Origin: Rebecca billardiae RCC1528
Taxonomy: Eukaryota > Protista > Haptophyta
Reading direction: 5' to 3'
DNA length: 64,000 bases
Assembly (NCBI GenBank): GCA_965240325.2
Contig: OZ251236.1
Location: 992,001 to 1,056,000, forward strand
The notes below the pieces were generated by a model. The model was not told the DNA's origin and did no database searches. It saw only the letters and a program-made list of their open reading frames with translations. Positions 8,201 through 30,812 of this stretch are shown here, piece by piece (within the stretch, counting starts at the first letter, position 1; each line of letters starts with the position of its first letter). Both the position numbers and the translations under genes were made by a program.

Positions 8201-8655
8201 TTTGCTCGCATATATAGTTAGATATAGTAGCGCGTATATATTCTTACTGGCGTCAGCAGTAACCGCCGCACACTGGCGGCATCAGCGAGTAGCATAAGCA
8301 CTGCCACTAGTGACTCTGCCGTAGTGCCGAGTCGGTATGTACACTGCATCATCAGCGCAATGTAGTGCTGCATATAGTCGCGGTCACTGATGTATAACTG
8401 TATGATGGTCGATCGCGTGGCGTGTGCTGCTTCGGAGCCCGGGTCCGCCGGTCCGGGAGCCGCTGGCCCGACGCGGGAGCCGCCGCCAGCGCCGCAGTGT
8501 GCGCCGCACTCCGCGCTCACGGCTCAGCGACAGTGCCATCATCTATTTTATGCACCATACAAGCGCAGTACAGCGGGGATGAGCCCTCCCTTGCCAGAAC
8601 CAGCACCAATCTGGTCACGGAGCCTCTCGCCGCGAGCGCCATGCGAGCAGATGAA

Positions 8656-8720
8656 CGCTGTGTGTCGGCGTTGCTGCTGGGCGTGATGGCCCATGCGCAG
8701 CAGCGCGTCATGTACAGTGC
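8656..8720 (-). promoter_or_regulatory. Candidate SECIS element (non-canonical apical loop)
   Basis: In the 3' UTR on the minus strand: CUGU-ac-AUGAC-GC-GCUGCUG...CAGCAGC-aac-GC-CGAC-ac-ACAG. This gives helix I, an AUGA/GA non-Watson-Crick core, and helix II. No unpaired AA in the apex. Confidence 0.55.
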
Positions 8721-8777
8721 TCGCCCGTCAAGGCGCGCGCAGACGGCCGTGACCAGGCGCGTGGCCGCAGGGAGGGC

Positions 8778-9248
8778 TTAGCGTCAGCCGCGGTTGCGGT
8801 TCGCCGGGCGATATTGCTGCCCTCCCGAAGGCGCGAGCGGCGAGAACGCCGGAGGCGTGTACCGGGAAGTGCTGGGACCGGACGATGAACTCGGGCGCGC
8901 AGCAGCCTCCCGCACGCGCTGCTCGCGCAGCTGGCGCTCGCGCTCCTCGGCACGCTTCTTCGCCTCGGCAGCACCCTGGGCCAGCTTCTGCTGCTGCCGC
9001 TCCCGCGCGGCGGCCATTGCCTCGTTCGCAGTCATGGGGGCCTTGCCGTTGTCAGTGCCGGCCTCCTTCACGGCGGTGGGCGCCGCTGCGCGCTCGAGCG
9101 GCATGCGCTGCATGGCGATGACTAGCGCCGCCGCGGCGGCGAGCACGTACACGCCATATGCCTGAAGCACGGTCCGGGCGTCGTCGGGTAAGTGGCTCGT
9201 CACCACGCCCCCCGCCAGCGCGGCGAGGAGGAGGTTCAGCGTCATCAT
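8778..9248 (-). CDS. SELENOS: Selenoprotein S (VIMP)-like, 156 aa, with UGA at 8784-8786 read as Sec
   Basis: N-terminal TM region, VIM-like EAMAAARERQQQKL, coiled coil, G/P-rich tail FSPLAPSGGQQYRPANRNRG, then TGA-CGC-TAA (G-U-R-stop). SECIS candidate downstream. Confidence 0.8.
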
Positions 9249-9500: not shown

Positions 9501-11456
9501 ATGAACTTCAAGAATAAGATGAAGCCCTCGAGCTCGGCGGCGCGAGCAAACCCTGGTGGTATGTCGCTGCCCTGCGCACGCGCCTGCACCCACTGTCACA
9601 GCGCGCGCGGCCCACCGCCGACATCGCCGCGCCTCTCCACCTCGGCTGCGTGCGCTGCCCGTCGCAGGCAAGCAGTATATCACAGCCAAGCTGGTGAAAG
9701 GCATCAAGGGGCTCGGTCTTGCGATCCAGGACGATGGTCTCATCGTCGGTATCGACCCGAGTGGCACCGTCGCGCAGATGGACCAGCTGAGGGTGGGCGA
9801 CAGGATCATCGCCATCAACGGCCTGCCCGTCTTTGACAAGCCGATCCGGCAGATCCTCTCGACGGGCTCGGCGTGGGAGGTCAAGGCGGAGCGCGACCCG
9901 AATGTGCAGACCGGGCCGGCCGACTACGCGCTGCAGCTCCAGCAGGAGCAAGAGCGCAAGCAGCAGGAGAAGCTGCGGCTGGCGGCGGCGGCTGGCGGGT
10001 GCGTGGCTGCGCGCGCATCGCACACGACCGGCCTCAGCGCACCCGCTGATGCATGCGTGCCGCCGTGCGCGCCGGCCCGTCTTCGCGCAGGGGACGTCCG
10101 GCGCAGCAGCCGGCCCGCCAGCCCCAGTACGATGCGCCGCAGACACGCTCGCAACCCGCGCAGCCTGCGCAGCAGCGGCCTCCGCCGCAGCCCGCAGCCG
10201 ACAGCGCAGCTCTGCAGGAGTACTTCGCGCTGTTCGAGGCGCAGGGGTTCGAGCGCACGCAGGTGCAAGCCGCCCTCGAGGCGCACAACTTCGACACCAA
10301 TCGCGCGGCTGACTGGCTGCTCTCGGGCGGCCACGCCGCTGCGGACCAGCGCGAGACGGAGGCTGCGCTTCGTGCGTCAGCCGCGGCGGCGCCGCCGCAG
10401 AGCGCGCCAGATCTGCTTGGGGACCTCTCGCTCGATTCGCCAGCGCCGCTGCCCCAGCCGCCACCGCCGCCACCCGGCGACATGGACCCGTTCGGCTCCG
10501 CGGGTGATCCGTTCGGGAGCACGGACTTTGGCGGCGGCGGCGGCGGCGGCGGCGGAGGGGACAGCCTCGCCGACGCGCTTGGCGGTCTCACGATGCAACC
10601 GCAGCCACCGGCCGGCGCCGCGCCCGCGGGTGGCATGCCAGCTGCCCAGCAGCAGCCGACGGCAGCCATGGGCGGCATGGCGGGCGGCGGCGGCGGGCCC
10701 CCGCCCTCTTCGGCGGGCATGGCCGCGGCTCGTGACCCAATGGCTTCGTTCGTGCCTGCGGGCGGTGGCAGCATGGGCGGCGGCTTGGGCACAGCCATGG
10801 GCGGCGGTATGGGCGGCGGCATGGGCGGCGGCATGGGTGGCGGCATGGGTGGTGGCATGGGTGGCGGCATGGGCGGCGGCATGGGTGGCGGCATGGGTGG
10901 CGGCATGGGCGGAGGAATGGGTGGCGGCATGGGTGGAGGAATGGGCGGAGGCATGGGCGGTGGCATGGGGGCCATGGGCGCCCAGCCACAGCAATTTGGC
11001 ATGGGCGGTGGCGGCGGCGGATATGGCGGCGGCATGCCTCAGGGTGGCGCCTACGGTGCTGGGCATGTGGGTGGGGCGTACGCCGGCGGACACGGCGGCG
11101 CGGCTGCTGGTGCGGCGCCGCCCGCACCACCAAACGCCGGGCCTGCAGCGCCTGATGCCTCGGCGGACCCATTTGCGGCGCTGGTCGGCGACAGCATGAC
11201 CAAGACAGCCGTGCCCGCACGGCCGGCTGCGCAGGCAGCCGCTGCCGTTGGTGGTGCGGCGGCCGAGAGCAAGCCGCGCGGGCCGTCCATGGCCGAGCTG
11301 AGCAAGCGCCAGGCACCGCCACAGCCACAGCCTACGGCGTCGGAGGGGTTCGGCGCCAACGACTTCTCCGTCCCCGATTCTGACAACCCGTTCGCGGCAC
11401 CGCCTGACCCCAGTGCTGGTGTCGCAGGAGCCGACTTGGACAACCCCTTCGCATAG
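9501..11456 (+). CDS. PDZ + UBA domain protein with DPF/NPF motifs and a GGGM repeat; putative endocytic adaptor
   Basis: PDZ motif KGIKGLGLAI...LRVGDRIIAING. UBA motif FEAQGFERTQVQAALEAHNFDTNRAADWLL. Three DPF and two NPF motifs. Introns 9559-9667 and 9999-10090 join the frames. Confidence 0.82.
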
Positions 11457-23455: not shown

Positions 23456-24075
23456 TAGTTAGTAGTTAGTCGTCGTCGCAGTGTATACTCTGTGTAGCAG
23501 CTAATACGTGACGCGATCGACCATCAGCATTGCTGTATATCGTCGCGTATACGACGCGCTAACTGGCTGCCGATATGTCGGATGCCGCGGCAGTGGACCC
23601 GGTCCGAACATCAGCACGGCCAGTCAGCCTGAATGATCAGCGGCAGTGCTGAGTGCAGCCTGATGATCATATATCAGTATTAGTAAAGCAGACGATGATG
23701 ATCGAATGTCGTCTGGAATATGACGCGATGTAATGATGACGATTTTCATCATCTGCTATATCGCGATGATCGATGCCGCCAGAGTCGTCGCATCGTCATC
23801 AGCATCGTCATCGGCATGCATATCAGCAGCAGCACTTAGTCTTACGGTCCGAGCGCACGGACTACGGAGTCAGCGGCGTCGCCGCTGCGGCTGCCAATGC
23901 CGCAATGGAGTATGGACATGGTGCCCAATAATGCCATTGTCAAATTCATCTGCGCGAGCCGATGAATTGCTGCGCTGATATAATAATGACGATTCTGATC
24001 GCGCGATACTGGTTCAGTAACGAGCCACGAGCAGTAGCCTCTGCTGCTGCGCACACTGACACGCGCGCCTCGGCG

Positions 24076-30594: not shown

Positions 30595-30812
30595 GCGGAG
30601 CGTGTGGCAGGATCCCGGGAACGCCCTTGACCTTGTCTGAACTCGATCGCCGGGATCCGCGCACCGGACTCAGTCGTCGCTCGCGGTCCCTCAGCCGAAG
30701 CCCACGTCCGGCCTGCATGGCGTCGACGGTGACCAATGCGACGGAAGCGCAGCGCCAACGGCGTACGACGCGCAGCGGACGCACCTCCGGGGTCTGTCGC
30801 CGTGACAGCAAC

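Follow-up and report, generated by a model that had tools for sequence, protein, structure and literature searches.

A probable selenoprotein S gene with a penultimate UGA codon and a variant SECIS-like hairpin in the haptophyte Rebecca billardiae

The 64,000-nucleotide stretch of Rebecca billardiae DNA that was analyzed here (the window, whose own numbering is used throughout) probably contains, on its minus strand, a single-exon SELENOS/VIMP homolog in which an in-frame TGA is read as selenocysteine (Sec) under the direction of a type II SECIS-like hairpin. In the predicted protein, a membrane anchor at the N terminus precedes a charged coiled coil that includes a VIM-like helix, and the disordered Pro/Ser/Gly tail would end in YRPANRNRG-Sec-Arg. 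We propose that the TGA at 8786 to 8784 is decoded as selenocysteine, that a single Arg follows before translation ends at TAA, and that the hairpin at 8720 to 8655 directs this recoding, the SECIS machinery presumably binding it despite a C-A bulge and a CGAC core. By analogy with animal SelS, the product may serve at the ER membrane as an adaptor whose C-terminal Sec is redox-active. Algae are already known to have this protein family, and the gene is a further, unannotated SelS member.

By sequence reading, the SelS open reading frame starts with an ATG at 9248 and runs without an intron for 154 codons on the minus strand (9248 to 8787), with its Met1 aligned with the N termini of two relatives (P0002 and P0003). 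The coding sequence up to the proposed Sec codon (8787 to 9248) was delimited by the open reading frame, by Pfam family PF06936, and by profile alignment (hhalign) to animal SelS. On the minus strand, the frame ends at 8787 with ...TAT CGC CCG GCG AAC CGC AAC CGC GGC, and this GGC is followed by TGA (8786 to 8784), CGC (8783 to 8781), and TAA (8780 to 8778), giving a C terminus of ...PANRNRG-U-R if the TGA is translated. The letters at 8786 to 8778 are thus just as an earlier model-made reading, which had only the sequence and its open reading frames to work from (the sequence-only reading), had quoted them. The G+C content of the window is 62 to 87%, and no tRNA genes were found in it.

Several searches, all run with the portion of the protein that precedes the UGA, support the assignment of the window gene as a SelS homolog, as the sequence-only reading had called it. 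In Pfam, PF06936 matched residues 26 to 113 with an E value of 1.3e-6 and a score of 28.8 bits, where the gathering cutoff is 29.8, and the same family was matched by 4 of 6 aligned relatives. When 1.84 billion representative proteins were searched with HMMER, five relatives came back, all of them SelS-type: a protein from a marine metagenome contig (P0002), an MMETSP protein for which no DNA sequence is recorded (P0003), the hypothetical protein T492DRAFT_1029292 of Pavlovales sp. CCMP2436 (P0004, from locus L002), a protein from an MMETSP-type transcript (P0005), and an animal SelS (P0006) that itself matches the Pfam family with an E value of 5e-62. With phmmer, the window protein matched this animal SelS at an E value of 7e-4 over the same 1.84 billion proteins. 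Word-indexed protein searches with the window protein, with a four-sequence alignment, and with P0005 added only P0007, P0008, and P0009. A haptophyte-type profile was built from four sequences (the window protein, P0002, P0003, and P0004), which hhalign aligned with animal SelS at 96.6% probability and an E value of 5e-10 over 119 columns (columns 30 to 152); the matched stretch takes in the YG(V/W)Y membrane segment at one end, the EA(M/L)AAAR helix between, and (Y/F)RPxxR at the C-terminal end. A scan of metagenome contigs with the four-sequence alignment confirmed no relative. At the DNA level, the exact pattern YRPxxRxxG-TGA-CGC-TAR matched three bacterial sequences, which lack an open reading frame there and were set aside as chance matches.

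A hydrophobic segment of the predicted protein at approximately residues 27 to 46 (9111 to 9170, minus strand), delimited by hydropathy and alignment and containing YGVYVLAAAAALVIAM, is the putative membrane anchor; the Kyte-Doolittle maximum, a 19-residue mean of 2.04 at residue 27, marks a predicted transmembrane segment, and animal SelS has its YGWY transmembrane region at these alignment positions. At the head of the Lys/Arg/Glu-rich coiled-coil region lies a VIM-like helix, ANEAMAAARER (residues 74 to 84; 8997 to 9029, minus strand), which the alignment pairs with RQEAMEAARQR in animal SelS and RQEALAAARLK in PDB entry 2q2f, and the stretch EAMAAARERQQQKL was found at residues 76 to 89. 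The VCP/p97-interacting motif of human SelS, RX5AAX2R, occupies residues 78 to 88 (PMC5725882). The sequence-only reading had assigned a p97-binding VIM to the window protein, and a VIM-like helix does sit at the matching position; however, the window protein departs from the strict RX5AAX2R motif in having Ala for the first Arg. At this position, P0002, P0003, and P0004 carry R...K versions, and animal P0006 carries the strict motif.

Toward the C terminus, the alignment revealed a conserved Y-R-P-x-x-R-x-x-G directly ahead of the Sec codon (8787 to 8813, minus strand), in which R147, P148, and R151 are invariant in 6 of 6 aligned sequences. Y146 and G154 do not vary among the four haptophyte-type sequences, and animal SelS has F in the Y146 column. 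The window protein contains no Cys at all. In human SelS, Cys174 is the proposed selenosulfide partner of Sec188, which lies about 14 residues after it (PMC3628699). The corresponding column holds Gln in the window protein and A, S, or V in P0002 to P0004, and it is Cys in P0005 and Ser in the close EukProt relatives of that protein, P0007 and P0008. From this alignment, a Cys-Sec pair does not seem to be general in the family, and protists appear to gain or lose the resolving Cys of SelS easily.

The DNA of homologs provided the evidence on the reading of the UGA codon. We compared the stop region of the window with those of the three homologs for which DNA was available, whose proteins are 33 to 43% identical to the window protein. 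Locus L001 reads GGA TGA CGC TAA, locus L002 of Pavlovales sp. CCMP2436 reads GGA TGA CGC TAG, and L003, the transcript of P0005, reads GGG TGA CGC TAG. An identical TGA therefore follows the conserved Gly in all three, with CGC and then TAA or TAG behind it in each, so that none has TAA or TAG at the Sec position and the proposed true frame end of the window gene (8778 to 8783, minus strand) has its counterpart in 3 of 3. Across the window and these homologs, the third base of the Gly codon varies and TGA CGC TAR is constant; the similarity ends directly past the second stop, the next 10 nucleotides differing in all four. If the TGA were a true stop, the six bases behind it would not be translated, and nothing would account for their conservation. 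The constancy of TGA-CGC-TAR between flanks that are not constant instead indicates that translation continues through the UGA, with a G-U-R C terminus predicted in 4 of 4 nonanimal sequences with DNA. On the strength of this comparison, the UGA at 8786 to 8784 is very probably recoded as Sec, in agreement with the earlier proposal of recoding. That reading had also warned that automated annotation would truncate the protein, and indeed six of six predicted proteins, including T492DRAFT_1029292 at NCBI, stop at the same-column Gly before the UGA.

What has been published on the family accounts for such an ending. The penultimate residue of human SelS is Sec188 (PMC3628699), and Ostreococcus tauri and O. 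lucimarinus also have SelS as a selenoprotein (PMC2375036). In a survey of 137 algae, SELENOS occurred almost exclusively in the Sec form and was among the least widely distributed algal selenoproteins (PMC7539508).

The window gene's 3' untranslated region (UTR) contains a SECIS-like type II stem-loop at 8655 to 8720 (minus strand), recognized by its folds, by a descriptor match, and by conservation with the Pavlovales ortholog. From the base upward, helix I pairs 8720 to 8714 with 8661 to 8655 (GC.CUGU/ACAG.GU), and above an internal loop the quartet sets AUGA (8711 to 8708) opposite GA (8666 to 8665). Helix II pairs 8706 to 8697 with 8677 to 8668 with one C/A mismatch, comprising 11 positions (the N/K position, 3 pairs, the C/A mismatch, and 6 pairs) with 9 of 10 paired. 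A 3-nucleotide 5' bulge, GCA (8696 to 8694), is followed by helix III of 5 bp, UGGGC (8693 to 8689) with GCCCA (8682 to 8678), and by a 6-nucleotide apical loop, CAUCAC (8688 to 8683). The AUGA lies 66 nucleotides after the TAA, where the sequence-only reading had placed it at about 65, and the hairpin starts 72 nucleotides after the UGA. Folding under a SECIS constraint, with the quartet unpaired, cost little (-26.8 versus -27.1 kcal/mol for the minimum free energy [MFE] fold) and disrupted none of helices I, II, and III. The bulge lies 12 nucleotides from the quartet and 27 from the GA, both within the published SECISearch spacing windows of 10 to 13 and 15 to 39 nucleotides (PMC2375036). 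The CUGU/ACAG outer helix, the CGAC, and the GCUGCUG/CAGCAGC helix that had been pointed out are all present as letters; the register of the last is a slipped alternative made possible by CUG/CAG repeats, and both the MFE fold and the Pavlovales sequence favor UGCUGC/GCAGCA together with helix III.

A relaxed SECIS descriptor (R-UGA, GA, helix II, and helix I) gave 18 matches over the 128 kb that make up both strands of the window, and three of these, the hairpin included, had helix II paired at 9 or more of 10 positions. The chance of such a shape in a given 300-nucleotide 3' UTR is roughly 0.01 to 0.04. Within 800 nucleotides downstream of the UGA, there was no better SECIS candidate. The stability of the hairpin relative to shuffled sequences was not exceptional in this GC-rich DNA (z = -0.6 to -1.2). 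Rfam covariance models detected no SECIS at an E value of ≤10 in 1.3 kb or in 101 nucleotides around the element, and on L001, L002, and L003 they likewise gave no SECIS family and only noise. The consensus-like Pavlovales element was thus missed as well, and the Rfam negative for the window carries little weight. The other two descriptor matches with 9 of 10 helix II pairs, at 23962 to 24023 (plus strand) and 1843 to 1808 (minus strand), are AT-richer and intergenic-looking, with ATGA/TGATGA repeats.

The main weight for a SECIS comes from conservation in relatives and not from shape. The 3' UTR comparison was made with one ortholog, L002, as L001 ends 104 nucleotides after its stop, too soon for a SECIS to be seen. 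The only significant 3' UTR similarity between the window and L002 runs from ATGA to GCAGCAA, with a score of 38 versus 21.3 ± 2.7 in dinucleotide shuffles, 0 of 300 of which scored as well. The Pavlovales element, at 2511 to 2558 of L002, shares the block GCCCAGCAGCAA with the window and has the same type of fold, with GA at the matching place. Its bulge is CAA, 14 nucleotides after the quartet, and its 3' core is GGAU. Between the two elements, there is one compensatory change of G-C to C-G in helix II, one change of G-C to G-U, and an inserted pair position, and the outer helix differs in sequence yet pairs in both, as CUGU/ACAG in the window and CACCAG/CUGGUG in Pavlovales. The sequence-only reading had named covariation in the stem as a thing to look for; one compensatory helix II pair and a re-paired outer helix were found, but covariation from two sequences is thin. 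Taken together, the comparison supports the stem-loop as the conserved 3' UTR element that is expected of a SECIS. In the transcript of P0005, a segment at 781 to 888 of L003 offers AUGA/UGAU and a 12-bp outer helix (helix I), but with its 102-nucleotide upper part it is an atypical candidate and was given no weight. That segment has a z score of -3.1 and, if a SECIS, would be unusually long.

The window element is off the SECIS consensus at three places: the AA, and the K and the W of KGAW. Its bulge, G-C-A, offers one C and one A and not AA or CC, and its 3' core is CGAC and not KGAW, which yields U.C and C.C at the outer quartet positions. Among known elements, only UGA/GA is invariable, the K and W classes are found in at least 70%, and the apical motif amounts to consecutive A or C residues (PMC2647825); human SelM, SelO, and Trxr3 have CC in place of AA (PMC2761289). 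The invariable features, AUGA and GA, are present in the window hairpin, as are the helix II length, helix III, and the loop. Judged by these features, the window element is a mild SECIS variant and not a new form. The suggestion of a lineage-specific SECIS form did not hold up, as the Pavlovales ortholog, with its CAA bulge and GGAU core, shares none of the deviations; on the one comparison made, the variation would belong to this genome and not to the wider lineage. We lean, with some reserve, toward the hairpin being a fully working SECIS despite the single bulge adenine in G-C-A and the CGAC core. If so, the AA/CC dinucleotide and the K/W quartet flanks would be dispensable in the Sec machinery of this alga, and pattern searches of the type NTGA..AA/CC..GA would systematically miss such selenoprotein genes. 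A Cys-free SelS would further mean that Sec acts alone or between the two chains of a coiled-coil dimer, and not via a Cys-Sec bond.

The same departures from consensus could mark a SECIS in decay, in which AA has become CA and GGAU has become CGAC; the UGA would then be mostly or wholly a stop, and SelS would end at ...NRNRG without Sec. Three simultaneous departures that are absent in the Pavlovales ortholog, together with the lack of an Rfam match, point in this direction, and transcripts without the SECIS are known to give a shortened human SelS (PMC3628699, PMC5133445). However, TGA-CGC-TAA and the full hairpin geometry are intact, with no invariable feature lost (PMC2647825), and a second allele (contig L004) carries the element unchanged, the differences starting only about 150 nucleotides further downstream. 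We consider decay unlikely, and Sec insertion directed by the hairpin is the reading that we prefer.

A leaky stop codon might also be passed without any SECIS. UGA-C is a weak termination context, and C follows the UGA in all four sequences, so that SECIS-independent read-through could insert a standard amino acid and then Arg, the hairpin being a stimulator or an unrelated UTR element. This is very improbable in our view, given that animal and algal SelS have Sec as the penultimate residue (PMC3628699, PMC7539508, PMC2375036). Moreover, the conserved UTR block starts exactly at AUGA and has GA at the matching position, which is a SECIS signature and not a feature of known read-through stimulators. 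It could be argued more fundamentally that the gene is not SelS but a low-complexity Ala/Arg/Glu-rich open reading frame that resembles a coiled coil by composition and ends in an ordinary TGA stop, since the Pfam score falls 1 bit below the gathering cutoff and a haptophyte-only profile run against PDB reached the SelS coiled-coil fragment only at a nonsignificant E value of 0.09. Yet the hhalign alignment covers the membrane segment, the VIM-like helix, and the Y/F-R-P-x-x-R motif besides the coiled coil, and composition leaves TGA-CGC-stop in three homologs unexplained; these comparisons largely refute the argument, and we give it next to no credence. The preferred reading thus remains a SelS homolog with a recoded UGA.

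Compared with animal SelS (PF06936; PDB 2q2f and 5kiu), the window protein shares the plan of a small single-pass membrane protein, with the YG(W/V)Y segment, the EA(L/M)AAAR helix at the VIM position, the charged coiled coil, the disordered (Y/F)RPxxR tail, and, as predicted here, the penultimate Sec and the SECIS in the 3' UTR (PMC3628699, PMC5725882). It differs in ending G-U-R where animal SelS ends G-U-G, in having a shorter tail and an extra N-terminal hydrophobic stretch at residues 3 to 17, and in the position of its SECIS, only 72 nucleotides after the UGA. It also differs from human SelS in having no Cys, so that a selenosulfide of the Cys174-Sec188 kind is impossible. The algal SELENOS proteins, compared here by description, are members of the same family in photosynthetic protists (PMC2375036, PMC7539508).

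The closest relative with genomic DNA is T492DRAFT_1029292 of Pavlovales sp. CCMP2436, which is 43% identical over about 100 residues. It ends like the window protein in YRPxxRxRG-TGA-CGC-stop, and its annotated protein is cut at the UGA; the frame at 2001 to 2399 of L002 continues with TGA CGC TAG, and a consensus-like SECIS follows. This Pavlovales SECIS lies 117 nucleotides after the UGA and differs from that of the window in a helix II that is one position longer, in the CAA bulge, and in the GGAU core. With type II SECIS elements in general, the window hairpin shares the unpaired A before UGA, the tandem G.A/A.G partners, the 11-position helix II, the 3-nucleotide 5' bulge, the 5-bp helix III, the 6-nucleotide loop, and spacings in the published windows, and it differs in having G-C-A in place of AAR/CC in the bulge, in the CGAC core, and in going unscored by the Rfam models. 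Selenoprotein K resembles the predicted window protein in being a small ER-membrane protein with a disordered tail, with Sec near the C terminus (the human protein ends G-G-U-G-R), and with no resolving tail Cys. The window protein had no sequence match to SelK in any search, and it differs from that protein in its SelS-type architecture of membrane segment, VIM, and coiled coil.

These results would correct an annotation error, in that the window protein and its relatives are predicted as hypothetical proteins cut at the Sec codon. They add to SELENOS, which is rare among algae, a small subgroup of four members that are Cys-free and end in G-U-R. The natural pair of homologous SECIS elements, CAA/GGAU and GCA/CGAC, offers a route to weighing the contributions of the apical adenines and the quartet flanks. 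Knowledge of how selenocysteine is encoded is unchanged.

The second allele comes from a public contig (L004) that is 98.3% identical to the window and colinear with it from 9345 to 8357. The 5' leader, the coding sequence, and the first approximately 230 nucleotides of the 3' UTR are identical in the two, and the differences, which are mismatches and indels of 2 to 8 nucleotides, all lie downstream of about 8551 (8341 to 8551). The onset of differences at about 8551 may reflect the end of the transcript. Beyond window position 8357, the next 29 nucleotides of L004 (977 to 1005) are identical to window positions 30630 to 30602 on the minus strand, and this junction reflects either an insertion polymorphism about 420 nucleotides downstream of where SelS stops or chimerism of the assembly. 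On the other side of the gene, a divergent neighbor on the plus strand (9556 to 11456) starts about 300 to 400 nucleotides upstream of the SelS ATG. It gave a weak PDZ match under the cutoff (E value of 0.002), and inspection by eye picked out a UBA-like stretch together with a long (MGGG)n repeat; the neighbor extends over two reading frames and so probably has an intron.
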